Shown here piece after piece: positions 4,799-32,000 of a DNA stretch of 32,000 nt. The position numbers were made by a program, and so were the translations under genes. Numbering within the stretch: the stretch's first letter is position 1; every line of letters starts with the position of its first letter. The notes below the pieces were generated by a model. That model saw only the letters and a list, made by a program, of their open reading frames with translations. It searched no databases and was not told the DNA's origin. Source of the DNA: Wallemia ichthyophaga EXF-994 (lineage: Eukaryota > Fungi > Basidiomycota); assembly GCF_000400465.1 (NCBI RefSeq), contig NW_008806283.1, forward strand, positions 30,001 through 62,000. Reading direction: 5' to 3'.

Positions 4799-6306
4799 CT
4801 ATAAACGCTGAATATTGACCCCAAACAACATCCCTGCTCTCCTCAAAAGTGAAATTATGACGTAAGCAACAACAAGCTGCAGGGTGTAGAGCACCTTCCT
4901 CACCCAACTTTCATTCTCCTCTTCATTGTAATGCTTGATGTCGAGAGCGTATGTGATCTCCAAATCGTCAGTGTCACGCGAGTCAGTGACAGTCCACTCG
5001 CGCATAAATTCATCCTCCAGCTCACTCAGCTCCTCTATAAGGTTTGAGTTTTTCTCTATAGCTGCAATCACAGGCTCAGCGAGATCTGGTGAGCCCAAGA
5101 GTACGCTAGAGTGAATACGCTCTGTACCGCCTTCGATTAGCTTTGGCTTGCGCTTCACTGGCATTAAGGTTGTTAATTTGGATGTGTAGGGGTTGTGTGG
5201 TGGCTGGATTGCGTATCTGAATACAGGCATCGCGAGCTGTTCCATCAACACCTCTTTATTGAGAGAAATTAGTGGGTTTATTTGACTCTATGAAGGTGTT
5301 AGTTTCTGTTTATGCTATATACCCGTACTATGCTCACAGCGATCCACATTCTGCTTATATCAGATAATTCTTTCATCGAGTATGATCCGCCAATATCACC
5401 ACTACTGCCTGTGAACCATACTTGCTTGCATTTCTGACCCATATCTTCACTCCCCCTCAACAACTCCAGCCGGAGTTCGCGCTGATTGGCGCGGTTTTCG
5501 TTGAGAGCCATAGCGTGATAGCAGTGTTGGATGCGTTGGCCGAGGAGCGCATCCGGAAGACCGAAGTAGCTTTCTGGCCGGGTTATAATGGAATTGAATT
5601 TGGAAGTGATGCTGTTTGTTCATGAGATATGAACTCGAACATTGAGTTCAACCCACCCTGGCAGACTCGGGGAGGGTTTCACAGTGCAATCAAACAGTGC
5701 TAAGCATCTGATTACCGTTGAGTTAGACTGGAGTAAGACGAAATCCTCAACGACCCACTTTATGATAAATTGTTGCTCCAGGTGGCGTGTATTGGATGGT
5801 GATGATAGCAGCCATGGCTTGAGCACCTCCTCAGCCTCTGAGGCCACCTTCCCACCCCTCTTGCGCTCAAAGAAGGCCTTTAAAATTGGGAAAAAGCGTC
5901 TGAGCTGGTCTCGCGGAAGAATGCCAATTTCGTTGATAACAGCGGCGAGAATGCGAGCAACATATGCACCTTTGCTATATCCTAAAAGAAAGATCTCATC
6001 TTTGCCGTCTTCACTGTAATTCATGCAGAGAAATGCATAGAGCTCGAATAAGCAATTTGAGAAGGATTGATAAGCTACTCCGAGGAGCTGTGAGAGGAGA
6101 GAGGAGCTGAAGTGAGCCGTTCTATATTGGGCATATTGCATTACTGATGGCTGAGTGCGTTTATCGATTGTCTCAATTGATCGGAGAAGGTGGACAATGT
6201 TGGAATGATTGGGTGTGCTGGTGGAGTCATCCCAGGACCCATCTATACATACAATAAGCCTGTGCATTTGGTGGCAGTGGGTTATAAGGGAGTGTATGAT
6301 ATTCAT
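4799..6306 (-). CDS. DUF2235 (Tle1-like alpha/beta hydrolase) family protein, divergent, with C-terminal hydrophobic helix
   Basis: Exons (minus) 6306 or 6267-5759, 5707-5657, 5611-5338 and 5287-4799, with GT-AG introns 5758-5708, 5656-5612 and 5337-5288. Motifs are LIVCIDGSW..SNI, IFLLGYSKGAYVARILA, CLALFDC, HCYHAMALNENR and QVWFTGSSGDIGG..LSDISRMW. The C-terminus is VLYTLQLVVAYVIISLL. Confidence 0.85.
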
Positions 6307-14378: not shown

Positions 14379-15367
14379 CTAATCGCGCATTGGGGAAGGG
14401 GAGTAGCGACGAGGAGGAGGAGAGCGACTGAAGCGGCGTGGAGGAGGAGAACGTCTGGCATAACCACCGCGTGGAGGAGGGGATCTAGAGCGAGGTCTAC
14501 CGTAACCACCTGCACGTGGTGGTGGTGGCGAGTAGTCGCGGTAGCGTCTTGGTGGGGGAGAGCGTGAATAGCGGCGTCTGGGTGGTGGGCTGCGTCTGGA
14601 GCCTGAACCTCTCCAGTCATCGCGGTCGTAGTAACCACGACGAGGAGGAGGACGAGGAGGAGGACCACCACGGTATCCACCACCACCACCGCGTGGAGGA
14701 GGGCGATCGAAGCGACGGTCGTCGAAGCCTGTCAAGAGGGTAAATTAGTGGGTTACCCAGAATAAAGACCTAACACACGTTTAACACCCATATATTGACC
14801 AGGAGTTGGAGAGTGTGGACGCTTAGTTGCACTAAAGTCAACGCGAATGTTACGACCGTGAATTTCAACGCCATTTAAAGCTTGAATGCACTTGTCTGCG
14901 TCTTCGATTGAGGCCATTTTAATGAAACCAAAGCCACGAGAGCGATCAGAGCGTTGGTCGTATACGATTGTAACCTTGTCCACTCTACCAAATCGATTGA
15001 ATTCATCTTCTAAATCGATTTCACGTGTTCTAATCGATAAACCGAACACACCAAGTGTTTCGTTAGGTTCTGGTGGGTTTTCATTGCGGCGACGTGGTGG
15101 AGGTGGGGAAGGGCGTGGAGGAGGGGATGGAGAGCGTGGTGGAGAGCGTGGAAGATGTGGTGACTGTGGCTGTGGATTTTGAGTACCTGGAGCGCCCTGA
15201 GTGCCTGGATTATCCTCTTGCTTAGACTCCTCCCAGCCATTCTGAGTATCATCACCCTTGAACCCCCAGCCATCATCATCCTCATTGTTCTCCTGCTTTA
15301 AACCCCAACCAGCATCCTCCGCTTGATTTTCTCCCTTGAACTCTTCACGTATTTCAGTGTCAGCCAT
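14379..15367 (-). CDS. TRA2: Transformer-2-like SR/RRM splicing factor
   Basis: The RRM has LGVFGLS (RNP2) and RSRGFGFI (RNP1), followed by the Tra2-type KRPHSPTPGQYMG. Intron 14778-14729 joins to an RGG/RS/RSPPP-rich exon (14728-14379). Confidence 0.85.
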
Positions 15368-15549
15368 TTAGTAGATGATGGTGGTTAGTGAGTAAGAAGG
15401 GAATACATATTAAATAAAATAAAATTGAAAAATGAATAAAAATATATAATTATATCTGACAGCTGTCTTGAGCTTATTCTTCTTGGAATTGTCTTCATCT
15501 CCTTCATCTCCAACCACCACGACCGACACCACGGCTTTGCCAAATTAAA

Positions 15550-17818
15550 ATGCCATTTGGTAAATCAACAAATGAGAATTTTATATATGGAATGTTTAAT
15601 TTCCAAGGGGAAGTTGACGATGAATTGAGTTTTAATTGTGGGGATATTATTTATATTATAGAGACAGACGAGGAATTTAAAGATGGTTGGTGGATTGGTA
15701 AATGCGAAAATGGTAATCAAGGTTTATTTCCTGAATCTTATACTTGTTGGTCTAAACCTATTGCCCCCGGTGTTGCTCCTGTTTCTGCCGTGGCCTCTGC
15801 GGCTTCCGTGACTGCCGTGGCTGATCAGGAACACCCAAAACAACCCCCACAACACACTCCCATCAATTCAACCATGTCTCAAATCGAAGACGCTATAAAC
15901 GACATCTCTACCAACCACCCTGACAATGAAAATCTTCTCGCTCCAATCGTTGAATCTACTAACTCAAACACTTCCTCACAAATCACCCTGGATCACTCTG
16001 ACAACGAAGATGATCCCATTAACGCAAATGCACGCTCCCTATTGGCGAAGAAGAACCTTAACCCTCCCACTTCCCTCCAATTCGGTAGCGATAGTGATGA
16101 AAATTTGACTCCTACTCATTCCCCTATTACTGATAATAATGAGCAATCAACTCCAAATCCTCCTTTTCAACCAGAAAATTCTTTTAACTCTTACAACTCA
16201 AACCAATCTCCTACTCCACCCTCTCCAAACACCGCAGACATCCCCAACTGGTCCCTCGACAACGTCCTTCATTGGGCTAAGCACAAAAATTTCGACGATT
16301 ACATATGTGAAAAACTTCTTCAACACGACATCTCCGGTGATGTTCTCCTCCAATTGGACACTGACTCCCTCAAAGAAATTGACATACTTGCTTTCGGTAA
16401 GCGTGTTAAACTTGCAAATGCTATTAAAGATTTGCGCATTTTAGCCGGTTTGGATCAGGGTGTTGATAACCATAAACGTGGTAGTGAGACATCCAAGTCA
16501 TCTGGTCATAACCAAACACCAATTAGCAACATCAACACCAGCAGCATCAACAACGCCCCATCTGACCCTCCTACTGCTGTCACAACCTCGCTACCCTCCC
16601 CACACTCTCAACCCGGGTTATCTCGCACCGCCTCAGCCACAAATTCCCTCCGAAGAGCTTTTAGTGGTCATAATTACAACTCAACTAACTCGCCCTCCTC
16701 AGCTACCTCACCCACCATCCAATCCCCTCTATCTCCTCGCACTCCCTCCCTCCGCAAACGCACTTCAGACTCCTCCGCCTTTTTCGGCGTCGGCAGTAAA
16801 GGCAACCCACGCAAACCTGCTCCTCGCTACAGTGGTGCCAGTAACGAGACTGAAAAGAGTGACAAGGAGGGTTGGTCAGCTGCCCGACTACTCGGATCAA
16901 AACGTTCATTGCGCAATATTAACGGCGGTGGTCGTCCTAGCACCTCGCCGCAACCGCAGCAATCCCAACCACAATCCTCATTCGCCAACAGAGTGTCTTT
17001 ATCTACTGACAATGCAAACACAAACACAAACACAAACGCAGACACTCGAAGGAGTGTAGTAGACCTCACCCACTTCCAATCTCGGGACGGTACAGCCCTA
17101 CAAAAAATAGGCGGGTGCGACTGCAAAGGGTGGTTAAAAAAGAGGGGGGAGAGGTATGGGTGGAAGATGCGCTACTTTGTTTTGAAAGGCTCGCAACTCT
17201 TCTACCTCAAGAACGAGAACGATACGCAATTGAAGGGCTTCATTCAGTTAAACGGCTTCAAGGTGCTCGCCGACGAATCTAACTCCTCCCGCCACCAATT
17301 CGCTTTCAAAATATCTCACGAACGTGAACGTGACACGCACCATTTTGCAAGTGAGGAGAAAAGCGTGACGAGAGAGTGGATGAATGCGCTCATGAAAGCC
17401 AGTATAGTGAGAGATATAGGAGGTGAGAGATGTGTTATGAGAGGCTTGCTATTTTCGTTACTAACGCCCTACTCCAGCTCCCGTCGTTAGTAGCTGCACT
17501 ATCCCTACTATCCCTCTGGATAAAGCGCAGACTATGTTTCCTCCACCCCGCCCTCCTTCGCCCACTTCTAGAGAGAGAGTGCAGAGAGCGAATGCACGCG
17601 ATAATCCTGACAGCCTCTCGCCGCAAGATGCACAGGTACTTATGGCCGGTGCGTCTGAGGGCGGTACTCAGGGTGGTAGTCACGGCAGTCATACTCGCGC
17701 TGGCGCTACTCACCCCTCTCACTCATCCCCCACTTACGAAAAGAAGCGCACTACCTCTTCTTCCTTTGGTAACCTGTCGAGCAGCTTCGGAAATGAGGAT
17801 CGAGACAAGGATTTTTAG
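15550..17818 (+). CDS. BOI1: Boi1/Pob1-like polarity scaffold (SH3-SAM-PH)
   Basis: Has an SH3 (ELSFNCGD..GWWIG..GLFPESY), a SAM (WSLDNVLHWA..HDISGDVLL..LKEIDILAFGKRVKL) and a PH domain (GWLKKRGERYGWKMRYFVLKG..WMNALMKA). Intron 17423-17477 joins to APVVSSCTIPTIPL..PPPRPPSP. Confidence 0.88.
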
Positions 17819-18277
17819 TTTGATTGAGTGAGTGAAAGAGTGCTTGCGATGGTATAATCTTCTGCCGTGTTAGCGCTGTTTCTTTTTCTCACTTGCTATG
17901 CTTCTTGCTTCCTGCTTCTCATCTCCGTGCTTGCTCACTCACTGGCCCGCATAGTGTACTATCTATACCCCCCCCCACATTCTCTATTCATTTCCTAGCC
18001 AGCTCAAGTTCAATATTTATGTTACATACTTTAATTCCATGTCTTACGCCTTATAAGTTATTATTCTCACACATATCACAACTCGCAACTCAAACGTGAA
18101 TGGCGCTCATTCGGAGAGTGGTATGGGGCGTCTCGCATACCTACATAAATACACTCTTTCATTTTCACTTTGAGCTTTATCATTCTGAGCTGTGATATCA
18201 CCAAGTGACTCAACACTCATACTCATCAGTGTCAACTTTTCATAATAGGCGATATTGTACATTACAAACTAACTTTA

Positions 18278-19348
18278 CTATGCGATATGCTGCGATTGAT
18301 TGCTGGGGAGGGAAAGATTGCGATGCGATTGTGATTGTGATTGTGATTGTGATTGTGAATGCGATTGTGAATACGACTGCGACTCAATAAGGCTATAATC
18401 CTTATCACTACTCCCCTTGGCACACATTTCGGGCTTCCTGGGCAAATGCAACTGACTTAATTCTTCAGTCTTGATCTGCGAGATGTGGGGCAGGGAGCTT
18501 CTCCTAAGCCTGAGGCCCATTCCTAGCGCCTCAAGTATATCGGCCTGGATGAAGAAGAGTGCGAAAGCAATGATTCCGATACTGCCAAAGAGCTCTTCAT
18601 TTCTCGCCTCGTTGTGCGTTCCCGGCGCTAAAGTTTTGATGTGAAGCGCAATAGATATAAAAGAGTAGAAAAGAAAGAGCAAGAGACGCGCAGCAAGTTG
18701 AATGTTTACAGTCCAGCTCGTCTGGAGTAGACCGCGCTGAGCAGCGCGCATCCGACACAGCAGAAACGTAAGCCATACCGCTACAACGAGGACGAGAACC
18801 ATGAGAACGAGTGATACGCTTACGGAAGCATAAAGAAGTTTATTCGGCGGTCGTATGCTAGCATACAGTGGTGTGCGTATCAAGATGGATGAATGGGTGA
18901 TTGTCTCTACTAGAAACGCAATCACGAATGGAATGCCAAGTAAGTATGGTATCATTACTAACACCCTCGAATCAGCCCAGTAGAAGTAATGTGATACTCG
19001 CGTAGATAAGGCTATATTTGTTGACACCCAGAATTTCATTACTACCATTAAAGTCGTACTGGCATTCATCACCATTCCTGGTAGTCTTGATACGGCATTT
19101 GTTATTTCTAGTCCTGTCGGCGGATCGGGGTCGTAGATATGCCCCGTCCATAGAAGCACCGCGTCCATCCATAGTGTGACGCAGAAAACAAAGTAGAAAT
19201 TCAGTACGACGGCGTGTTTCTTGACATTGCGGGATGATAGCGTGAAAATGAATAGGAATAGATGTAGTGCACTGCCTGTGACTAGGAGTGAATAGTATGC
19301 CCGCAGTTGCGACTTTGAGGCAAGTGGCGGAATAGAATCTCCGTCCAT
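18278..19348 (-). CDS. Intronless multi-pass (about 7 TM) membrane protein, GPCR-like, unknown function; C-terminal Gln-Ser repeat
   Basis: A 356 aa ORF with about seven hydrophobic stretches and a polar tail. The SQSQSQ tract is encoded by a hexanucleotide repeat at about 18327-18358. Confidence 0.7.
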   Translation of the reverse strand: MDGDSIPPLASKSQLRAYYSLLVTGSALHLFLFIFTLSSRNVKKHAVVLNFYFVFCVTLWMDAVLLWTGHIYDPDPPTGLEITNAVSRLPGMVMNASTTLMVVMKFWVSTNIALSTRVSHYFYWADSRVLVMIPYLLGIPFVIAFLVETITHSSILIRTPLYASIRPPNKLLYASVSVSLVLMVLVLVVAVWLTFLLCRMRAAQRGLLQTSWTVNIQLAARLLLFLFYSFISIALHIKTLAPGTHNEARNEELFGSIGIIAFALFFIQADILEALGMGLRLRRSSLPHISQIKTEELSQLHLPRKPEMCAKGSSDKDYSLIESQSYSQSHSQSQSQSQSQSHRNLSLPSNQSQHIA

Positions 19349-19502
19349 GTGCTATAGCATGGAGTTTGGTGTTGTGTGTAATGTGTTGATGGGTGTGTAT
19401 CTGTACAAGTTTCTTAATGCGCAATGAATTTATCTAGCGAGTGAAAAATGTATTACACGATATTAATCTCAGACACGATCAGCCCTTGGCGGTGAAGAGA
19501 GC

Positions 19503-19760
19503 TGCGGATATCTAAGGCTGCAGATAATCTGCACATGAATTTCATCGTGGATGATATCGGATGTATTTATACTTTGTCTTTTGCCCTGTTTGCACTGAGA
19601 CACCTTTACCGGATGCTATGGATGAATGCTTTCAATGCTTTTTAGCGTGGATTTATTTTTAAATATAATAGCTTAAGGTATATTAAATAAGCCTGCTTGA
19701 TTACTTTCCTAAGAAGTACACCAACGCGATCTGGTCAATGCGAATACCGATGCGGATATC
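19503..19760. promoter_or_regulatory. Two exact copies of TGCGGATATC plus CGG-triplet variants in the divergent 7TM/dehydrogenase promoter
   Basis: TGCGGATATC occurs at 19503-19512 and 19751-19760, and CCG-atg-CGG at 19747-19755. CGG half-sites are typical of Zn2Cys6 factor sites; function is inferred. Confidence 0.35.
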
Positions 19761-20002
19761 AATTAAAATCTCCACTTAGCTTCTCCTTAGAATTTGCAGC
19801 ATCTGCGGCAGCAGCAGCATAATTGATAATCTTCCACTGCCCTTCAGTCCAAAACAGCCCAATACAACCTAATACACCCTTATACTAGTAATAATCAATC
19901 GCTTTATAATTTATTACAACTAATCATCCACACTAAGCACTTCTGCTCCAGTCGGCTCTCTCCGCTCAGCTGCACTGACAAATCGGTCAAGTTCCGTGAT
20001 TG

Positions 20003-20011
20003 TATATATAA
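20003..20011 (+). promoter_or_regulatory. TATA box of the polyol dehydrogenase gene
   Basis: TATATATAA about 40 nt upstream of the ATG at 20049. Confidence 0.55.
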
Positions 20012-20048
20012 GCGACGACAAACGAAATCGTCTTACAACACCTCCAAT

Positions 20049-21368
20049 ATGACTGATAGACAACTATACAACACTAAGAACCTCCTCGAGCACCCAGAAT
20101 TCAGAATACTCAAAGAAAAGCCTGCCAAAGGCACTGGAAGAAATATAGCGCTCACATATGACGTTGATCATGTTAACAAGTTCGTCGAGAAGCCTCGATT
20201 TGATCCTGCACCAGGCCAAGTAGAAGTTAATGTTCGAGCGACTGGAATATGTGGATCGTGAGTGGTTTTACTGCCAATTTTCCCACCTAACACCAACACG
20301 TCATAAGTGATGTGCACTTTTCGCAGCATGGCCACATCGGCGATATGGTTGTGCGTTGCATTTGTGGTGCGGGACACGAGTCAAGTGGTAAATATATCAT
20401 TACTTTGGCGCGTTTTGGCTTATCGTGCGCACAGGTGAGGTCACCAGAGTCGGGCAAGGTGTTACAGAATGGAAGGCGGGCGATAGAGTAGCAATCGAAG
20501 CGGGCATCCCCTGTGGTAATTGTGAATTCTGTAAAGTAGGTCTCAGTCAGTTGATATCGACGTATCTGACCAACTCAACAGCTTGGAAGATACAACGCGT
20601 GCCAGAACGACATCTTTTTCAGCACACCGCCACACTTCGGTACAATGAGCCGCTATCACTTGCATCCAGCTGCGTGGCTACACAGGCTACCAGACTCGGT
20701 TTCGTTCGAAGAGGGTGCGCTCTGCGAACCGCTAACGGTCGCTATGGCCGGTATCTACCGCAGTGGATTGCGGTTAGGTGATGGCGTAGTCATCTGTGGA
20801 GCTGGACCTATTGGTTGGTCGGATATCTTCAACAGTAGCCAATCTAACAATTTACATAGGTCTGGTTACCCTCTTAGCAGCAAAAGCTGCCGGATCCATT
20901 CCAATAATCACCGATCTATCCCAATCACGTCTCGACTTCGCTAAGAAACTCGTCCCATCCGTCAAGACAGTCCTCATTGAGAGAGGTCAGACACCAAAAG
21001 ACATTGCGCAGAAAATCAAAGAGGAAGCTGGTATGCCTCTCACCCTGGCATTGGAGTGTACGGGTGTTGAGAGCAGCGTTCACGCCGCTATCTTTTCCAT
21101 GACGTTTGGTGGAAAGGTGTTCATCATCGGTGTGGGCAAAGACATACAGTCGATTCCATTCATGCATCTCTCCGCTAATGAAATCGACATCCAATTTCAA
21201 TATCGTTACGCTAATCAATATCCACGTGCTATTCGCTGCGTCGCTGAAGGCATGATCGACCTCAAGCCACTTGTGACGCACAGATTCGACCTCGAGGATG
21301 CCATGGATGCCTTCGATACCGCCGCTGATCCTAAAAGTGGCGCTATCAAGGTTCAGGTCCTGGACTAA
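20049..21368 (+). CDS. lad1: Zn-dependent polyol dehydrogenase (MDR family), L-arabinitol 4-dehydrogenase-like
   Basis: Exons 20049-20257, 20308-20387, 20435-20535, 20582-20813 and 20860-21368. Motifs are TGICGSDVH, GHESSG, CGNCEFCK..RYNAC, FFSTPP, GALCEPL, GAGPIG and IPFMHLSANEIDIQFQYRYAN. FSTPP and FQYRY favour the LAD branch over xylitol/sorbitol dehydrogenase. Confidence 0.85.
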
Positions 21369-21604
21369 ACGGAGGATTTCTTGTATGATTTAGAATTCAT
21401 GATTAAATTTTTTAAAATTGGAGTGATCAGTGTGTTGATAGAACACGTTTGCTTGCAAGCAACAATTATGTCATGTATTAAGGTATAGGTAAGTAGTGCG
21501 AATATAATTAGCTAGTATTCCGTGTTTGTTGTATATGAATTGTTTTAAGAATTATCATGTGTTTGATGAAAATTTTTTTCCATGTCCAATCGAATAGGTT
21601 TCAC

Positions 21605-23759
21605 CTAATAAACCCATCGTGCCTCCGATGAATCTTGCATACGCGCTCTGATCTGATATCCGAGCAACTCCTGGCGGATGTTCACTGTCCTGTGAAACTT
21701 GATGTTGTTGCCTCTGATGGCTCTAAAGTTACCCTTGTTCATAGCGTAGCGCTTCTTTGGTACGCCTGATTGTTGGTCTTGATAAAATTCCTTCTGAGGC
21801 ATGGCTTCTAATAACCACCAGCTCTTAGCTATAGCTAGTTGATCGTTGATAGATGTCAAAGCTGAGATAGCAGAGATTAGTGGGCTGTATGGATGTAATG
21901 AAAAAGAGAGCTGTGTTTATAGTTCATCTCTCCTTCTTCTTTTCTACTCACAATCATAAACATCCTCGTGCTCCTCTGAAAGTTTAGAGCGGTCGTAGCG
22001 CTCGACGGGCACGTTCTCCATGTTTGGTTCCGGGGGGAAACCTTCTGGGACATTATATGCCGCCTCTTTTCGAGGCTTGACGATCGGATAAAGAGTGGAA
22101 AGGTCTAATCCGTAGTAATCGAGCAAGTGCGTATGAAACAGAATCCCACTACCTGATTTGAAAGATTGCCTGTACATCCAGCGCAGTGAGATTCTGTGCA
22201 ATGCATTTCTGGTCTCGTTCGAGACCGCTCCACCTGCTCACCGTTAGTTCTCCATTTTTCTCTGTCTTTCAAGTAATCCAAAACCTACCACCGACATCCG
22301 CGTGAGCGCCAAGGAAGTAAACTTCTTTGACCTTCGTATTGTCACGTATTTCGTCGTCTTTATCACTGGCGTAGGAATCGTGTTGCACAGGCAACTTGTA
22401 TAATTGCTGCAACAAATTCTGGATTTGAGGGTTGGTTCTGTCAATGCTGTCCAGGTCTACACGCTTAGTGCTGAAACGCGATTTGGCAGTTTGCTGACGC
22501 AGCTCGTCTATTCTGGAAAACAGCGCCTGTCTCATGTTCTCAATCTTTTCCCATGGATCAACCTCCTCCTCATGTTGACTATCTTTGTCGTCATCTTCGA
22601 GCTCGTTCACACTATGGTCGAATTTGATGTCGTGCTTTTTCTCTCGGTGATGAAACCACGAATCCTTGTTTGAGCGTTTCTCTTGCTCTTGTTCCTGAGT
22701 CCAATGACCTGCACGGAACTTGACGCGGTGCTTTTGCAAGTTTAGTAAGTAAGCAAATTAAACAAAATCAAACACACCTCATCTAACGCGACAGCGTGAG
22801 TAAAGTTTTTCACAATGTGATTGGAGTTTGTAAATGGCAGCTCTCTTGGGTAGAATCCAACGGAAGATACAGAATCCCATACTCCGATCCACTGTATATC
22901 CACATTTATCCCAAAGGTGGATTTGAAGAGCTTAGATTGATCGAAACCACGTTTGCTGTTGTCTTTGTACATGTCGTATGCGAACTGTACCTGTTGTAAA
23001 TTTCCTTTTGGAAGCAATCCCACTTTCAGCAGCATACCAGCCAAGCAACGGCAAGTATATGCACCTCTCGAGAAACCAATCATGCAAATTTTGTCACCAA
23101 TTCTGCCACTGTGTGAGATGACATCGTTTGTGCCGACAAAGAGCTTACCTATAATTCTCCATCAGGTACGTATATGCCTGCCTGACATGATGCCCCAGAC
23201 CGCTACCCACAGCCATGTCGCTGATATCACTAAGCTTGTTGGCCACAAAATTGGCGCGCTTGGTAGTTGAGTACGTTCCTAACCCACTTTGATAGTACAC
23301 GACCTGCTTCTCGGGCTCATCTTTCACCATACTCCTAAAGAAGCGTATGACGTTGGAGTTGTCATCGTCAAATTGATCGCCAGTGCCATCCAAACACAAA
23401 ACAATTGTACGGCCCTTATCGTCTTTGTTTTGATCGCGTATCGCCTTGAGGCGTTTGGGAACAACGTTGTCACCTCTAAAAAGGGCCTGTGGTTCATTTC
23501 TCGTCTTGGGAGGATTGATGATGAGCTGCTTGTCATTTTGGTAGTCCGAAGTGTCATTCGCTTCCAGATTAAGTGCCACATCGTAGCTGCGACCTTGAAA
23601 GTCTTTAACGTGTACAGTTTCAGTATTTGTCTCAAGAGACTTCTGAGTCGATTTGACCCGCTCTTTGAGTGATGGTTTATTAGATGGCTCATCGTTCCCC
23701 ACTTGCTGAGTTAAGTGAGAAATACTCTCAAGCTGTGTTGGTGAATCACCGCCGCTCAT
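21605..23759 (-). CDS. DUF2235 (Tle1-like alpha/beta hydrolase) family protein with complete Ser-Asp-His motifs
   Basis: Exons 23759-23149, 23102-22778, 22730-22289, 22233-21952 and 21861-21605. Motifs are [74 protein letters not shown] and WWLLE. Confidence 0.92.
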
Positions 23760-25029
23760 TGTCGATTAATAAGACAGACAACGTCAAAGCAAGACTTATT
23801 GACACTGGAGCGAGAGCAGTCCCTGAGTAAGATTTTTAAATCTCCGCGGCTGTCCAAAGCGTTCCGCGGTTAAGGGAAGTAAATCTAATTAGAAAGACGT
23901 GGATTGAATTGACTAGGATTTGTCTAATTGGATTGCGCATTTTGACTCGCAAGTAGCTTCATCATAGTGTATATGTGGAGTAGGTAGCAGTCAGTAAAAC
24001 TCCAGCTCAAGCACAAGAATACGCCACCTTTCTCAATGGGGTATCATTTCATTGCAACTATACAAGTCTGCAGCGTTTTTGTTCTACGCACGGACATGTC
24101 CGCAACTCTCCTGCATAAGTCCTCATCCTTTGCATCTCCCACTTACTCCATGACCACCATCATTTAAACATAAAGTCGTTATAAGTTTTAATCCGCAGTA
24201 TATTTGACACACGTAAATCTCCACTTTGACCTCTGAGGACCCTGAGGATGAGATTGTTGGGAGCATCGCATAGTAGCAGACACGAGCATCCGGGACTTCT
24301 CAGAGGTTTCCTAAGCTTTTGCAAACACATAGCTGGGCACACTTGACTCACGTTGAGGTTTATCGAATCTATATTTATCGTAATTGGGAGAGCATATTAG
24401 GATATCTGTGTCTTCTAAGCAATCTCTTTACTTCCCTCCCTCACCTTAGGTTCTAGAGATTTAATCTGTTTTACATCATTCGGAGACCCTGCTTATGTCA
24501 TATGGCTATTTATACGCGATTCACGCCGCAATTTCAACCTACGCGAACCAAAATCTGCGATGTCGGAATGAGTATAAGTATGTATTCTCTTTTTCTGCGA
24601 AAACCCAGCACCAGAATTCGATAATTAAAGAAGCTGTGATCATTATGTCATTTCGGATGTTGTTGTAGTGGAGCAATATTCCTTTAACTTGAGCATTTCA
24701 CCGGGACAGACTCTTTAATATATTCACACTCATGCTGGATGCCAGAGTTGGTCTAATATAACTGAATTTAAGATACACCGAAAATTTGCTGGTGGTCCGT
24801 GCGCTCGTGAAAATTAAGAATACTTTCGAGAAACCTGCATCAAAAGTCCCTTTCAAAGATGATCTTTGGTCCATACCGAATTAGGAGACGTAAGTGAAAT
24901 TTCAAGACTAATTTGTCTTATTTGTTTGACATTTATACAGTGAAACATTGTGAGACTTATCCGGTAACTTAATTTACCGCGTATTATCACGCAATATGAT
25001 CGAAAAGGTTTCAGTCGCAGTCTTCCAGG

Positions 25030-25036
25030 TATAAAA
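25030..25036 (+). promoter_or_regulatory. TATA box of the small secreted precursor gene at 25087
   Basis: TATAAAA about 50 nt upstream of the ATG at 25087, followed by a pyrimidine-rich leader. Confidence 0.55.
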
Positions 25037-25086
25037 TCAGCTCCACTTACTCTTCTTCCAATCAGAACCATCACACTCTTTTGAAA

Positions 25087-25360
25087 ATGAAACTTTCTAT
25101 CTTTGTCGCCTCAGCCGCCATCGCCTCTGCAGCAGCAGTTCCAGTTGCTGTGCGTTGTTAACTTTTTATCTCGTAATATCAAGCTGAATTAACGACAGCG
25201 TGAAACCCAAGCTGTTCCAGACTTGCTCCAGAACCTTGGCTTGACTCAAGACCAACAATCAGTCCTCGGAAATTTGCTCAAGGATCTCGGTCTCGTACCA
25301 CAAGATTTATCTTCAAGCAAGCGTGAGGCTGCCATCTCAGAGATTCAAGCCGGCCTCTGA
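25087..25360 (+). CDS. Small secreted Kex2-type peptide precursor, copy A (74 aa, intact)
   Basis: Exon 1 (25087-25149) encodes MKLSIFVASAAIASAAAVPVA, a signal peptide. Intron 25150-25198 is GTGCGT..CAG. Exon 2 encodes RETQAVPDLLQNLGLTQDQQSVLGNLLKDLGLVPQDLSSS-KR-EAAISEIQAGL*. Not in the ORF track. Confidence 0.8.
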
Positions 25361-26849
25361 ATTGATGTTGACTCATGATTCCCTTTTTATAAAATTCTCA
25401 CATGGCTATAGGATTTAGCTATGATTTACTTTATATCATTGTAATGATTTTTCTACCATGACTTTACCAAATTAATTCAGTGTCTTTGATATTAGTTCTT
25501 ATAACGATAGCGTGTCGCCATCTGCTTGCAACAGAATAATTGCAAGTCATGCTGGTAGAGCGCTGCCATTCTATGTCTTTCCGCTCAATTGAAGCCATTT
25601 GCGGATAAACGACAAGCAACGTTCGACCAACGAAAATCAAGACTGCTCAAAACAGCCATGGAAAATCGATGAGAGCTCTGTCATTTCTGAGCAAGCTAAA
25701 TTTGTTTTATGCATAAGCTGGAGATTGCTAGCTCCGGGAAATACCTTGTCGCGTGTTCAGGGACACGCTTAGAAGGACCTTTTTATCTTTCTTTGCGGAA
25801 TTTGCGCAAAATCTCTTCAAGACGACATATAAGCTCTTCACTCGTTTGCAACACTCAATGCAGTGATATTCATCATTTATGGCTCAACCATCGCTACACC
25901 AGAGTTACAGTAAGTGTCTGGCATTTTCAAAGCATGTGACTAACGCAAAGCTATAGCGCGATGGGCAAGCTGTCCCAGACCTTCTCGCTGCACTCGGGCT
26001 CACTCAAGATTATAAGGCTTCTTTACCAAGGTCGATGATTTTGTACCTAAAGACTCAACAGCTGAACTTAGACACCCACTACACCACAACTCTAAAAAAA
26101 GATTGAAGTTTAGTAGGAATTTTAGTGCTGAAATTTGTATCCCTATTGCCAAAAGCAGCCAAAACACGTTCTCTGAAAGCCACTTAGCAGGCAATCTCAA
26201 ATTTGTGGGGAATTGAGCAGATGAAACAGGCGGTAATTTTCATTGATTAGTACAACCATACATTTTTATGGCGAAACGTGTGTTTTTGATGTGTAGTAAC
26301 GAAGCAAAGATAACGATTGATAGACTTTCAATAACAATATAGTGTTTAGAGTGCATTATGCATGAGTTTATCTCAAACTATCATCTTTAGTGGCAATGGT
26401 GTTGAGTGTAGTCTTGTTGCAGGTTTGCGGATTGCTTGGATATACATATGTAAGCAAAGCTCGCTATCGATAGCTAAATGTAATCGCACGTGGTGGAGTG
26501 ATACTCGATAACATCCACGTCCTAACACGCCTCAACGATTGCCACAAGGGAGACTCATGATCGCGTATGCTTACACAATCGCGAATGATTAATTATCATG
26601 CGATCGAAAGCATTGGGTTCAGAAAATTTTAGACGCAGCGATCAAATGACGGAAAATATTAGCTAAATTGTTTCACATCAGCCGCGCACATCAGCCGTCT
26701 TCAATGTATGCAGCTAACCTGAAGACCGACTGTCACAAAAAATTCCTGTTACAAATTAAGGCACAGCAGACTAGAAAATCACCGCTGAAAAATATCCGTA
26801 ATGTTAGAACCTTTCAAGACAACCCTCATGTTCCTTAAAATTTCTGGAA

Positions 26850-27074
26850 ATGAAACTCGGAATCCTCGCCGTTGTAGCCGCCATCTTAGTCTTGACCATT
26901 GCTGTACCAGCAGCCATGAGTGTGCAGATTTTCCTCTAGCTCAGTTGACCATGCCTTTGGAACGATGAAGATCTTATTGAAGAACTTGTCGATGTCGATG
27001 GAGTAGCCGAAGATTTCGGAGCAATATTGTCCCAGACCGCTAACACAAACAACTTGATTGCTGACAGACATTAA
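26850..27074 (+). CDS. Small secreted acidic protein (about 57 aa)
   Basis: Exon 1 encodes MKLGILAVVAAILVLTIAVPAAM. A 51-nt GT-AG intron (26920-26970) removes two in-frame stops. Exon 2 encodes NLIEELVDVDGVAEDFGAILSQTANTNNLIADRH*. Not in the ORF track. Confidence 0.55.
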
Positions 27075-27264
27075 TGACTAGAATGTCAATGTGGATCTAA
27101 TCAACGCTTAGTGTTTTTAAATATATTTCGGATCTTTGGATTATCAGTCAATTTCTATACGTACGTCTCAAATTCGGGATGATCAATTCTATATTAGTGA
27201 AATGACGAATTGTTACAGGTCAATGAAGTATGTTATGTGCAAATTTTCAATGCGAGCCTCTCAC

Positions 27265-29293
27265 TTACGCCTTCAAGTTAAACCCAGCGAATAAATCCGA
27301 CAACTCATCTTCATCAGCTTGTGGCAGAGGAATATCTTTAGCTTTCTCGGCTACATCGGTCGGTGGTTTGGGTTGTGCTAGTTGTGATGATGGTGCTGCC
27401 TTTCGTCTCGCTGGGACAACTTTCGGCACTGGAGGTTTAGTGATGCGGGATGGTTTTGCAGCTTTTGTCTCGCCCGCTGGTGGGGGCTTGTTTGGCGGTG
27501 CATTCGGCCGCGACGAGACCACCTTCCTCTTTTGTAAAACCTTCGTAGGCGCACCTTTTTCATTCTTCTTCTCCTTTAGTGCGCCCACCGTTCCTTTGTC
27601 CTTCTTCGTGTCAGTTGACTTTGTGGGCGCTCTCCTTGCTTTCTGGCCCTTGTCCTCGACTTCCTCTTGAACCTTGTCCTTCTCTGTATCCTTCTCCTCG
27701 TCTTTACCACTACTGCCAATGTCCTTGCTTTTATTGTTCTTGCCTCCGTTGCTGTCATAATCCTCATCTTTATTAGCGCTGCTCTCACTCTGCTGTTTCT
27801 TGAGCGAGTTCCTCTCCTGGATATTGAGGATCTTGGCACGTACACCTGCGGCCATAGTTCTTCCAGTAGGCTTTTCCTGAGTCTCTTTACCATTAGACTG
27901 GAGTGGTTTCACCGCGAAGCGTGTATATCCAGCTGTTGAGGAGGTAGGTTGATCTGAAGCCTTCTGCTCCGTCTTCCTCAGTCCGATACCGGCAGCTGGG
28001 CGTCTAGGACCACTTGTGCTCGAGCCGACTGTGCTGCTACTACCACTACCACCGCCACCTGCACCACTGCTACTACCACTAAGCTTGGATATCGGCCTAC
28101 GTGCACCTGTGGTAGCTGTAGGAGTAGTGCTTCGCGGCCTCTCTGATGATTTTGACGACGAAGATGCAGGTTTGGTGGGCTGAGATACCACCCTGGATGG
28201 ACCACTGGTTGCAGTGGTCGGATGTCGCTGCTCTTGGGTGGATGAAGACAGCGACCGGGATGGTAGTGGAGGTACTTGGGGTGCAGGCTGCGAAGATTGG
28301 GCAGATTGTGCTGCTGATGTAGATTTTGAGAAGCGGACTGCACCAGTGTCACTGTTGGTATTGCTTGTACTTGCACTAGACTGCGTCGGTCGCAACGGGC
28401 CACCTGTACTGCTTGAAAGAGGCTCATTCTCATCATTGTCGGTGTCCAGGTGTTCTATTCTTTCGCGCTGTGGGCGTTGTGCTGGTGCAGGTGGCAAGGA
28501 AGGTTTTTTAGATTGATTAGCATTTCTTGGTGCGATCTGCAAGTATTTTCGTATAGTTGGAGTGAGTGGGTCAGTGAATTGATCCACTCTGTCAACGAAT
28601 TTGAGAGTGTACAGACCGTAAATACGCTTCGAAATAGCGCGTACATCGGCATTTGAGTCGGTGGCGCAAGCGCGCATAATAGTTTCGATATCAGTGATAC
28701 GAGATTTGAGAGATTGAGTGTCATAGCTCTCGATTGCAGTCAAGAGACCTTCAACTACAGCCAAACGCAAAGACTGAGCTTTGTCAGAGTAAGCATTTCT
28801 AAGGTGAGGGATGATTGAGGGTAGCCTAGTAGATGAAATGATAGTAATCAAGCATTTCTTAGCGCGTACTACGTATATCTTAGTACTCTTTGAAGTGAGT
28901 TTAAGTAGAGTTGGAATGAAAGTGGCACAGAAGGAATCAAAGAGTGAACCAAGCCGTGGTGCTATTATCGATAAGCAATCAACAGCCGCTGACATCACTC
29001 TTGATCTCTCACTGTTCAAAGCCCTAAGGAATCCCTCAGAGTGATTGCGTAGGATCTCCAAATAGATTGAATGCTTGTACCCGCCGCCGTTGGTAACAGC
29101 TGCTAACACTTTTAAAGAGTTCTCAATTTTATCCCAATTCTCCTCATTCTCGTGTAAGTTTAAGCTGGAAATTGCTGTAATCTTAGTTTCTAGTGCGGCT
29201 TCCGAATTCGTCTGCGAAAAAGAAATTAACAGATTTGAAGTAAGTGAAGAAAACACAAACCTCTATCACATCAGGCACCTGCTTCATTCCCAT
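27265..29293 (-). CDS. CLASP N-terminal (TOG/HEAT) domain protein, Stu1/CLASP-like, with long disordered basic tail
   Basis: Exon 1 (29293-29261) encodes MGMKQVPDVIE, followed by intron 29260-29212 and exon 2 (29211-27265). Motifs are ENEENWDKIE, LNSERSRVM, LLKLTSKSTKIYVVRAKKCL, DKAQSLR, ATDSNADVR and FTDPLTPTIRKYL, then an S/T/P/K-rich tail. Confidence 0.85.
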
Positions 29294-29345
29294 AATCGGG
29301 GCGTTTGATTTATATCGCCGTCGTTGTACTCTTGATAGAAGCGCA

Positions 29346-29423
29346 ACGCGTATTTACTCAATTTGGTAAATACAATTTGCTCATCGAGTAAAATAGTAGT
29401 AGTTGTCTCCTTGTATTACGCGT
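29346..29423. promoter_or_regulatory. Two ACGCGT (MluI cell-cycle box-like) sites upstream of the CLASP gene
   Basis: ACGCGT at 29346-29351 and 29418-29423, in AT-rich DNA 50-130 nt upstream of the ATG at 29293. Confidence 0.4.
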
Positions 29424-29924
29424 TAAATCACTTTCATTCTCATCGAAATATCCCCCTTATCTCTAACTTCCAGTCGAATTAGCTGAATAACGTAAAATAT
29501 TGGAATATAAGCTCAAATAACAACATTTTATCTAAATATAATTGCATCTCAATAATCCCTATCAAATGAGCTACTCGAACGTTTTATGCTTAGCTCCCGC
29601 GATCAATTCCGCTGCACCTCAACCTTTGGCAATAAAGTAGGCTGCTAAAATTTTGCAATACACACATATTCTGTTTTATAAGTGCTTCAAATGCATAATA
29701 TCGTCTGCAATGGTCATGACTTTATCTGAAAATTTTGCGAGCTGTAGTATAATGTCTCAATATCAATCAAGACCCAGTCATTACACGTCTCTGCCGTCTG
29801 CAAGTGTTCTTTTTATCGATGGTCCCTGGACCTTCCACGTCATATTGAGGCACTTAGAAAGGCATCCACGATATCAAGATTGATCGTACAATACAACTTC
29901 CACCCTTTTGCTTTGTCTAAATCA

Positions 29925-30375
29925 ATGAGTTTCGAAGTGTTAGATATTGCTGCCGCTGTACCTTTGGCTGTAAGTGCACAAACGTCCATTTGTACACCGT
30001 ATCATTGATGCACACTTGCGGGGCCAAGTTGAACCAACCAAGCGTAATGATTGTCTATTATTTGAACTCTAAGACAAAACAATTGATACTGATCCTGAAA
30101 ATTCAATTAACCTCTACACTAAGCGTGACGGTGGATCTCTTCAAGATCTGTCTGTAGCTGATCAAAATATACTTGAGACATTCGGTTCTCTGAACCGAGA
30201 TACTGCTGTCGGAAAGCTCCTCAACTATTTTGCTGCTAAATATACCAAGCGTGGAGATTGTCAACTGCTCGGTATTCAAAATAAAGCTATTCAACTCAAG
30301 ATTCAGAAGTTAATCGATATCTACACGAATGGTAATGAGAATCATCCAAGTATGGCAATCACGAGGATAATATAA
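29925..30375 (+). pseudogene. Kex2-type repeat peptide precursor, copy B (pseudogene)
   Basis: Exon 1 ends AAAVPLA then GTAAGT (29970), as in copy A. The expected acceptor at 30020-30021 reads GG, not AG. Exon 2 reads GQVEPT-KR-NDCLLFEL*DKTIDTD..YT-KR-DGGSLQDLSVADQNILETFG..KYT-KR-GDCQLLGIQNKAIQLKIQKLIDIYTNG. The TAA at 30070-30072 sits where the paralogous repeats have Gln (CAA). Confidence 0.75.
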
Positions 30376-31297
30376 TTGTTGTTGGAGCTCACGTTAACGA
30401 CATTCTCAAAAAGCGCGAAGACACTGTTGCGGAAAGACAAGCTGGTCTCTGAATTTTTCTCAGGGCTACGGGAAGCGCCTAAGAGCTTTCAAATTTCTAC
30501 TTAATTGTTATTGTTATCTTCCCACCTTTCACGTTGTACACATTTGTTAATTGAGTGAGTTTTAAATGAAAGCGCAATTGCGTCATCTTCGTTACAATCT
30601 TAATGTCTCGCTTTTATGGGGATGGTGACAGTTGATCGAGCTAAATTACGGAAAAATAATTCTTAAATGTTTCGAGGAACAGACGATTAGCAATGTATGC
30701 AAGGAAACCCACACTTACCAAGTCATTGAACAAACATTACATTACAGGCTAACCAAAGTTGTCTCTTTAGTGGATGCTCAGGTATTCATTAATACGGTAG
30801 CTTACAGAGCAATCGAAGAGCTTCACCACTTATAGGAGACACACGAAGGCAAATTACTTCATCAGCCCCATATCATGACAAATATTCGCTGATAGCGGCG
30901 TGCTAAGCGACATTACTTACTCGCACACAATATTTCGCAAAAATTTGAAGCAAGTGAAATTCATATGAGACATAGCTGTTACCATATGGTACCCATCTGA
31001 GAACCAAGCGTACCTGAACCACAATTTCATGCCGAGCAATTGCAGTCTAAAATTGGAAACCTTCTGCAATATGTATTGTTTCGAAACATCTTTAAGACAC
31101 TGTTGTTTTGCTTACTGGGACTAAGACGGGGTTAGTTAAGCATACAGGGTCAAGTATCTTACGTAAATAACGTCACTATTACATTGAACGATTGAAAGCT
31201 TGGCCGGGTTGGATAACCCATACTCTAACTTTAAGACTCTCTATTTTTAAAATAGCCACCAATACAATCTTTTTACTAGAATAACAAGGTAAGTACA

Positions 31298-31713
31298 ATG
31301 AGATTGTCTTTACTTGTCGTCTCATCAGTCATCTGCGCTGCTGCTTCTGTAGTGCTGTTTGCTGTAAGTTGAATAATACTTTGTCACTGCTAAAGTGAAT
31401 GCAGAATTACCTTCCAAATGATATAGCTCCCACCAAGCGTGGTGACGAGCAGCTGATCAGCCTTCAAGATGAAGCTATCGATCCTGATATCAAGCTTTTG
31501 GTCAAAATTATCTTCAACGGAACTGATTCATCCTCAACCAGCAAGCGCGATGACAAGCAGTTGATAGGCCTACAAGATAAATCGTTTGATCTTGACATCA
31601 AGGGTTTATCAAAATTATCAAAAACGGAACTGAAGAATCATCTAAGCGTGAGGTTGCCGCTCCCAAAATTCAAGCTGGCCTTTGAGCTGGCGTCTTCTGA
31701 TTTGCCTTTTTAA
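31298..31713 (+). CDS. Kex2-type repeat peptide precursor, copy C (1-nt frameshift in the second repeat)
   Basis: Exon 1 (31298-31363) encodes MRLSLLVVSSVICAAASVVLFA, followed by intron 31364-31404. Exon 2 reads NYLPNDIAPT-KR-GDEQLISLQDEAIDPDIKLLVKIIFNGTDSSSTS-KR-DDKQLIGLQDKSFDLDIKGL. Adding 1 nt at about 31609 restores KIIKNGTEESS-KR-EVAAPKIQAGL* (stop at 31683-31685). As written, the frame ends at 31713. Confidence 0.78.
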
Positions 31714-32000
31714 GTGATGTTATCGCAGCTGCGGCATGTAGCTAAGCGTTTTCTTTTGTATATAACACGTACTCTAAACTTTTTATTACAAATTAGTGTG
31801 TTAATTAGTGCCGCATTGTAATGTCTAAAAATAAAGCTGACTTGTCAATTGGCTGTGATGAGCCAAATTACTTTAAACTAGCTCTTCATAGCACTTCAAT
31901 GACTAAAAACTTGAGCAGAGCAATTTTGCTATAAGTCCGTAGCGAATAGGTTTGTGAAGAGCTAGAACGTGTTCATATCCTTGCTGGAGTTGTGTAGCGC

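Follow-up and report, generated by a model that had tools for sequence, protein, structure and literature searches.

A Wallemia-specific cluster of small genes that probably encode secreted repeat-peptide precursors of the KEP type

A window of 32,000 nucleotides (nt) from the reference genome of the obligate halophile Wallemia ichthyophaga EXF-994 (RefSeq assembly GCF_000400465.1, contig NW_008806283.1, positions 30,001 to 62,000 of the forward strand) was analyzed for a family of small genes, termed A, B and C, in which Lys-Arg (KR) pairs divide the coding sequence into peptide segments. In the most probable reading, these small genes form a cluster confined to Wallemia and encode precursors of secreted peptides of the Kex2-processed repeat protein (KEP) class, individual copies having reached different stages of gain or loss. 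What is new is a genus-specific family that fits this known gene type and has so far been annotated as hypothetical proteins only. The products of genes A and C match the EXF-994 records exactly. An initial annotation of the window had proposed three dispersed paralogues; A, B and C are real, two further elements in the window (the copy A2 and the possible relic X) had been missed, and another intact paralogue (A3) lies beyond the window end. Coordinates of all features are collected in Table 1.

Gene A is intact and probably the working member of the family. Its first exon specifies a single N-terminal lysine, a 19-residue uncharged stretch and several AXA-type cleavage sites, and is conserved in W. 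mellicola and on a metagenome contig from ENA (L009). The spliced product of 74 amino acids (aa) is identical to EOR00646.1 / XP_009268359.1, hypothetical protein J056_000456, and its unit scores 85 bits against a unit profile. The intron was found at the same position and phase in five genes or alleles with a length of 46-49 nt, and in none of the five did read-through yield one continuous frame from signal peptide to unit. Each A-type unit is a nested repeat, composed of a duplicated half-unit of ∼17 aa with the pattern (A)VPxLLxxLGL (window 25199-25318; contigs L007, L009 and L010). The two halves of the W. mellicola unit are identical at 8 of 17 residues.

Tandem arrays of the same unit were located in other strains and species. 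The A-type layout consists of a signal-peptide exon, the conserved phase-0 intron, units of 36-41 aa and the tail KR-EAAIS.(I/L)QAGL, with KR between units in most alleles. Gene A contains one unit in the reference and two to at least four in other strains. With a unit of 123 nt and a k of at most 120 in the assembly of the population genomes, most assemblies break within the array; no contig spanning gene A carries more than two units (L010, L009). The single unit of the reference may itself be a collapse of the short-read assembly, which was generated with SOAPdenovo at K = 21. Its derivation as a chimera of the first and last units of the GCA_004918895 array was considered and rejected, since the reference allele is distinct and has retained both KR and the ancestral tail. 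The entry GME456_g in the expression table of Zajc et al. 2013 was also rejected as a record of gene A, being 360 nt long against 225 nt and carrying a GME identifier of a series that does not map to J056 tags.

The sequences themselves show how the genes and their repeats are built, that KR and the tail are kept from one Wallemia lineage to another, and that the unit is under purifying selection. KR was invariant at the unit boundaries of reference-type W. ichthyophaga alleles, of W. mellicola and of L009, and the linker that precedes it varied (APQGSSSS, APT or APV). Between units of one gene, 21 codon differences were synonymous and 3 nonsynonymous, where 75% nonsynonymous would be expected (P ∼3e-10). 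The unit peptide is therefore translated and constrained.

Exon 2 of gene C reads NYLPNDIAPT-KR-GDEQLISLQDEAIDPDIKLLVKIIFNGTDSSSTS-KR-DDKQLIGLQDKSFDLDIKGL and onwards, with KR at 31435 and 31543. Unit 2 is broken by a 1-nt deletion near 31605, which diverts the frame ahead of the tail. This deletion is common to the reference and the eight other NCBI assemblies examined, and GCA_004918895 carries an additional TAG in unit 1. Strain E3P86 has an annotated intact allele of 115 aa (P0023), which recurs on Logan contig L006; this allele ends in DIKGLIKIIKNGTEESS-KR-EVAAP(T/K)IQAGL before the stop codon and matches the restored C sequence at the repaired site. What the reference carries at gene C is therefore no error of sequencing but an allele, with loss of function or an altered tail, that segregates. 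C-type proteins turned up in W. ichthyophaga-like genomes only. Logan gene calls (L006 1986-2333 and 4112-4495; P0005; P0011) read TGA as Trp and skip introns; their C-terminal extensions, such as QAGLWAGVFW, are false, and the true stop codon is present in the DNA.

Copy B is a pseudogene, a dead copy. Its first exon had been called degenerate and does lack a hydrophobic signal core, failing the simple-rule test. An in-frame TAA lies at 30070, and the frame breaks ahead of the tail KREDTVAERQAGL (30411-30452, followed by a stop codon). Within B lie two C-type units and, bounded by KR, a spacer without a match to the unit profile; stops are also present. The phase-0 intron of 41-52 nt assigned to all three paralogues was recovered in A (49 nt) and C (41 nt); in B no AG acceptor for such an intron was found, and the sole in-frame canonical acceptor would give a 73-nt intron, cutting out part of the homologous sequence. 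Another intron, at ∼30331-30386 of B, was considered and rejected: NGNENHPS aligns with the C coding stretches NGTDSSSTS and NGTEESS, so a frameshift is simpler. The TAA is common to six other strains and is replaced by CAA in two lineages, the frame break before the tail is present in all lineages, and lineage L006 shows KR changed to KC twice together with a 1-nt insertion.

The copies are linked by several shared elements. The units of B and C matched each other within the window by tblastn (E = 4e-5), in agreement with the unit proposed for them by the initial annotation, and AAAVP(V/L)A was read directly before the splice donor in both A and B, as had been noted. When the 32 kb are translated in six frames, the pattern [KR]RE.{6}QAGL followed by a stop codon turns up exactly three times, and these matches close A, B and C. 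The last peptide is shared by A and restored C as described, and the restored frame occurs naturally in the intact allele; the tail DNA, previously given as near-identical, matches at 32 of 42 positions (76%). B is a mosaic: its exon 1 ends A-like, with AAAVPLA ahead of the donor, its units are C-type, and its tail is the common one. Given this mosaic and the shared intron position, A-type and C-type genes fit one common origin.

Further copies, and one possible relic, lie in and beyond the window. A2 consists of an exon 1 remnant without a hydrophobic N-terminus, a 47-nt intron at 25910-25956 and an exon 2 in which 25 conserved codons (RDGQAVPDLLAALGLTQDYKASL) are followed by diverged sequence; its two exons are out of frame, and it is without annotation in any strain examined. 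Its DNA is 74% identical to that of its closest relative, the intact paralogue A3 (L002 8197-8646), which is annotated in many strains. X is possibly the relic of another family member, its membership being uncertain. The donor of this unannotated exon is GTGAGT in GCA_004918895 and ATGAGT in the window, and no in-frame second exon was found for it (window 26850-26939). Unit-profile scans of the window gave no copies beyond those described. With disabling mutations in B and C that differ between strains and lineages, and a truncated A2, the family undergoes birth-and-death evolution, as had been proposed.

Outside the genus no relatives were detected. A HMMER search with the unit profile, which scores 75-87 bits per unit, returned Wallemia proteins only among 1.84 billion representative proteins, three other hits being spurious low-complexity repeats; the family is lineage-specific, as originally suggested. 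Protein searches with gene A likewise gave Wallemia proteins only. A unit-profile scan of Joint Genome Institute (JGI) metagenome contigs gave no relatives. Pfam scans of A-, B- and C-type proteins assigned no family and gave sub-threshold helical hits only (such as UBA_6 and PRODH_N), and a search of the literature for the peptide motifs found no papers. To call the family hidden was an overstatement: A and C are annotated hypothetical proteins, and W. ichthyophaga had already been ranked a top KEP producer (PMC6339444).

The KEP assignment was assessed against the features of that class. Signal peptides were judged by simple rules (N-terminal charge, uncharged stretch, small residues at -3 and -1) and not with SignalP. 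By these rules A, C, A3 and the W. mellicola orthologue each have an N-terminal K or R, a hydrophobic uncharged stretch of 19-20 residues and small residues at (-3,-1). Dibasic sites lie between repeats in reference-type alleles, W. mellicola, L009 and C, the exception being a divergent gene A allele (P0003), at the one boundary visible in it. The published survey, by Le Marquer et al. 2019, counted a protein as a KEP from three repeats and four KR fragments upwards, scored EXF-994 with six KEPs, and placed W. ichthyophaga and W. sebi as top producers relative to secretome size (PMC6339444). The gene A orthologue of GCA_004918895 has at least four units, read from two contig ends. A, with one unit, and C, with two, fall below the survey thresholds, so the family probably lies outside the six KEPs scored for EXF-994. 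As a description, KEP-like holds for the tandem units, KR and tail of the orthologues; it does not hold for the window copies, which have fewer than three repeats, or for the one visible boundary of P0003.

A route of maturation can be proposed from this architecture. The gene A product would enter the endoplasmic reticulum (ER) by way of a cleaved signal peptide. Kex2 would cut in the late Golgi after each KR, which in most alleles follows each unit in a flexible linker, and Kex1 would remove the exposed basic residues. Several copies of an acidic peptide of ∼34-39 residues, together with the 11-residue tail peptide EAAISEIQAGL, would be released to the wall or the medium. E, D or G follows each KR, as at known Kex2 sites such as those used in alpha-factor processing. 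Wallemia is absent from the section of the PMC6339444 supplement listing species without Kex2, Kex1 and Ste13.

The unit peptides are acidic, with a net charge of -2 to -5 and a mean hydrophobicity near zero. Each is predicted to form two short Pro-capped amphipathic helices, (A)VPxLLxxLGL, with a hydrophobic moment of up to 0.55-0.74 over 11 residues. An acidic character fits extracellular proteins of this halophile; the hydrophobins of the species are described as unusually acidic in the W. ichthyophaga genome paper. As a guess by analogy, the peptides might act extracellularly at the surface or wall, or in signalling, with a logic and size like those of Rep1 of Ustilago maydis. A role as cationic antimicrobial, pheromone or core of a peptide that is ribosomally synthesised and modified post-translationally (RiPP) is unlikely.

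Several observations weigh against the assignment of these genes to secreted, Kex2-cleaved precursors. Reference gene A has one unit and one KR, from which one long peptide and the tail would be expected, and no window copy reaches three repeats (A one, C two with the second frameshifted, B two). A and C rest on ab initio gene models (GeneMark-ES). AlphaFold2 modelling of the two-unit ENA protein from a six-row alignment returned a predicted local distance difference test (pLDDT) score of 53, with short helices only. Profile-profile comparison of A-type with C-type units found no similarity (probability 0.7%), and a common ancestry of the two is suggested by other features, namely the exon for the signal peptide, where the intron sits, the shared tail and the mosaic copy B. 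KR is also missing at several places. A3 is without KR; the 3' end of gene A in GCA_004918895 (L002 1-309) has a last unit without KR and an altered tail ending in SSSIQPGTAISGTPDGL, at a place where the reference and W. mellicola keep KR-EAAIS.(I/L)QAGL; and P0003, a deeply divergent allele present in several strains, has no KR at its one visible unit boundary, where SPAEGTNADD is joined to IQTLPDLL with no dibasic site.

The P0003 junction, the missing KR of A3 and the lost last KR of GCA_004918895 count in favor of a serious rival, in which the small secreted repeat proteins do their work without being cleaved, perhaps as flexible components of wall or matrix, and KR is an incidental linker residue pair; that KR cleavage is so far a prediction from sequence also counts in its favor. 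This explanation is considered unlikely, though to be taken seriously. KR is found at every boundary in three lineages despite linkers that differ in length and sequence, it also bounds the unrelated C-type units, and it precedes the shared tail in A, B and C. The residues that follow KR are those of known Kex2 sites, and Wallemia does not figure in the published list of species without Kex2.

The divergent allele raises a further reading of gene A. In strains with P0003, 9 kb of flank on the upstream side agree with the window at 99-100% identity, and over the last 1.2 kb (window 24100-25330, compared with L003, L004 and L005), comprising promoter and gene A, identity drops to 93% and then to ∼70%. 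This deep dimorphism is restricted to gene A, with KR-separated units in one haplotype and no KR at the visible boundary of the other. Linkage disequilibrium in W. ichthyophaga decays within about 1.3 kb (PMC6738226). Conceivably, if with rather low probability, gene A is held as two ancient haplotypes under balancing or diversifying selection, which would point to peptides of recognition, compatibility or antagonism; the same low standing is given to a salt-adapted, repellent-like surface layer. Were selected haplotypes or a halophile surface layer confirmed, this would be a peptide system without a described counterpart, and the dimorphism of gene A is the most intriguing lead of the analysis.

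Release of antimicrobial or membrane-lytic toxins, in the manner of Ece1/candidalysin or of killer toxins, is regarded as improbable to a greater degree. Short segments do reach amphipathic moments of 0.55-0.74, the C-type units contain the Leu/Ile-rich stretch IKLLVKIIFNG, and deep allelic dimorphism at gene A could suit an antagonistic or recognition system. Against these stand the acidity of the peptides and their near-zero mean hydrophobicity, the lack of similarity to known toxin families in the Pfam scans and with the HMMER unit profile, and the fact that the more hydrophobic copies, C and B, are those being lost. The membrane-active helices suggested earlier are accordingly disfavored as far as the classic cationic type is concerned.

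Precursors of alpha-factor-type pheromones or of dikaritin-type RiPPs are a very poor fit. KR-EA at the tail of gene A resembles a combined Kex2 and Ste13 site and is conserved in three A-type lineages, and KEPs act as RiPP precursors in other fungi (PMC7329392). The Ste13 signature noted in the initial annotation is confined to that tail: units open with ET or DG, neither of which is X-Ala or X-Pro. With 34-39 aa, the peptides exceed the 9-14 aa expected of mature alpha-factor-type pheromones, and they lack Tyr, which the core of a dikaritin-type RiPP would contain, as well as Trp and Cys. Basidiomycetes are without alpha-type pheromones (PMC6339444). No mating-type (MAT) gene (STE3, HD, HMG) and no UstYa/DUF3328, tyrosinase or methyltransferase domain was found among 20 Pfam-scanned window open reading frames (ORFs) of at least 100 aa. 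Neither the pheromone nor the RiPP reading was borne out. That the family is an annotation or chance artefact, made of short ORFs with hydrophobic starts, has next to no probability: all models are ab initio, B and A2 are clearly non-functional and C is frameshifted in the reference, against which different species share the exons, the place of the intron, KR and the tail, units differ by 21 synonymous to 3 nonsynonymous changes and score 75-87 bits each, and the tail motif is exclusive to three gene ends; judged on this conservation and substitution pattern, a chance ORF is effectively refuted for gene A.

Elsewhere in the window, whose gene content is fungal, are genes for ribosomal proteins, for a CLASP/Stu1 homologue, for a class V/VII chitin synthase and for a Boi-like SH3-SAM-PH protein. 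An exact look-up of a neighboring 646-aa ORF gave no match. The Pfam scan of the 20 larger ORFs identified housekeeping genes only (chitin synthase, ribosomal, WD40, RRM, Boi-like, ADH, DUF2235 and CLASP). GCA_004918895 contigs align with window 15104-25326 at 98.5% identity and with 25197-32000 at 96.9%. The CLASP/Stu1-like gene keeps its position in all W. ichthyophaga strains examined. The chitin synthase gene bears no relation to the peptide-precursor family. The second of two DUF2235 genes lies directly upstream of gene A, and this neighborhood is also kept in W. mellicola.

Table 1. Members of the peptide-precursor family and other features of the locus. Locations are window positions unless a contig is named.
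Feature	Location	Strand	Description
TATAAAA box	25030..25036	+	∼55 nt upstream of gene A start codon; read from sequence, also in other strains
Gene A exon 1	25087..25149	+	signal-peptide-like, MKLSIFVASAAIASAAAVPVA
Gene A intron	25150..25198	+	49 nt, GTGCGT...ACAG, phase 0
Gene A exon 2	25199..25360	+	RETQAVPDLLQNLGLTQDQQSVLGNLLKDLGLVPQDLSSS-KR-EAAISEIQAGL, stop; R, one 39-aa unit (ETQAVPDLL...DLSSS), KR at 25319-25324, 11-aa tail
A2	25879..26106	+	truncated A-type pseudogene; tblastn E = 3e-5; 44 bits against unit profile
X	26850..26915	+	orphan signal-peptide-like exon, MKLGILAVVAAILVLTIAVPAA; ends at phase-0 donor position
B	29925..30452	+	pseudogene; degenerate exon 1 (MSFEVLDIAAAVPLA), C-type units, KR at 30040, 30121 and 30247; unannotated
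TTTAAAA (TATA-like) element	31246..31252	+	∼50 nt upstream of gene C start codon; read from sequence
Gene C as annotated	31298..31713	+	J056_000458, 124 aa; exact match to EOR00648.1
Gene C exon 1	31298-31363	+	signal peptide
Gene C intron	31364-31404	+	41 nt, phase 0
Original gene C end	31608..31685	+	now in -1 frame; IKIIKNGTEESS-KR-EVAAPKIQAGL, stop
A3	L002 8467-8726; L010 12235-12494		intact single-unit paralogue, MKFMIFASVAAILGSTIATPVT|RDGQAVPDLLAALGLTQDQKAAVPGLLKNLGLTPTENVEAAFTVPEAPAGF, stop; 70-73 aa; ∼1.5 kb beyond window position 32000
W. ichthyophaga GCA_004918895 gene A			at least four units ETQAVPDLLQNLGLTQDQEAVVGQLLKDLGLAPQGSSSS-KR; split over two contig ends
W. ichthyophaga GCA_004918625 gene A			assembles through: signal peptide, 2 units, KR-EAAISEIQAGL, stop; 115 aa
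Gene A in five further W. ichthyophaga strains and most W. mellicola strains			contigs end inside gene A array
W. mellicola gene A orthologue			units DGEAVPDLLEKLGLTQDQEAAVPQLLKNLGLAPT-KR; tail KR-EAAISSLQAGL, stop
ENA metagenome contig L009			whole gene present: exon for signal peptide, phase-0 intron of 48 nt, two units of identical sequence, tail KR-EAAIASAEAGL, stop
CLASP/Stu1-like gene	27265..29290	-	unrelated; Pfam CLASP_N, E = 5e-22; between A-type and B/C-type copies
Class V/VII-type chitin synthase, 3' part	14-2990	+	Cyt-b5, Chitin_synth_2, DEK_C; intron-split over several ORFs
DUF2235 gene	5620-6306	-	DUF2235 / type VI secretion system (T6SS) Tle1-like phospholipase catalytic domain
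DUF2235 gene	22269-23759	-	DUF2235 / T6SS Tle1-like phospholipase catalytic domain

KEPs are a widespread fungal route to many secreted peptides from one transcript, and functions are known for few of them. The present family is a clean, genus-restricted example of the type in the most halophilic fungus known. Its apparent variation in unit number, segregating frameshift, dead copies and divergent allele make it a tractable case for the study of peptide function and of gene birth and death. Such genes are hidden by short-read assemblies and repeat thresholds: gene A of the reference looks like a plain 74-aa hypothetical protein, and the family is more interesting across the population than in the single reference window.

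With described KEPs (PMC6339444; Umemura 2020, PMC7329392) the family shares a signal peptide, tandem near-identical units, KR between them and an inferred release of multiple peptide copies from one transcript. It differs in that A and C of the reference fall below the repeat thresholds and one allele class is without KR at its one visible boundary; the Wallemia unit sequence matches no described KEP motif. The alpha-factor precursor of Saccharomyces cerevisiae (MFalpha1) has KR-E sites and a peptide repeated within one precursor in common with the family, as well as X-Ala after KR in the gene A tail. Its repeats are ∼13 aa long with Ste13 dipeptides before every copy, and it belongs to the Ascomycota, whereas in Wallemia EA occurs in the tail only and the units are three times longer. 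Ece1 of Candida albicans is also a secreted polyprotein cut at KR into several peptides, as the Wallemia precursors would be, but its peptides differ from each other in place of forming a repeat series, and its active peptide is a toxin of hydrophobic, cationic character, whereas the Wallemia peptides are acidic repeats.

Rep1 of U. maydis (PMC3133707) is a basidiomycete protein that shares the signal peptide, repeats, Kex2 sites and amphipathic peptides. Its peptides, of 34-53 aa, compare with Wallemia units of 34-39 aa after removal of KR, and once released by Kex2 they coat hyphae and act at the hyphal wall (PMC3133707). Rep1 has 12 repeats and forms amyloid, whereas for the A-type units a helical, acidic character is predicted from sequence. 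At E ≤ 0.001 the unit profile gave no hit beyond Wallemia, which is indirect evidence against homology, the Rep1 sequence itself not having been compared. Rep1 is the nearest functional analogue of the Wallemia family, by analogy and not by membership.

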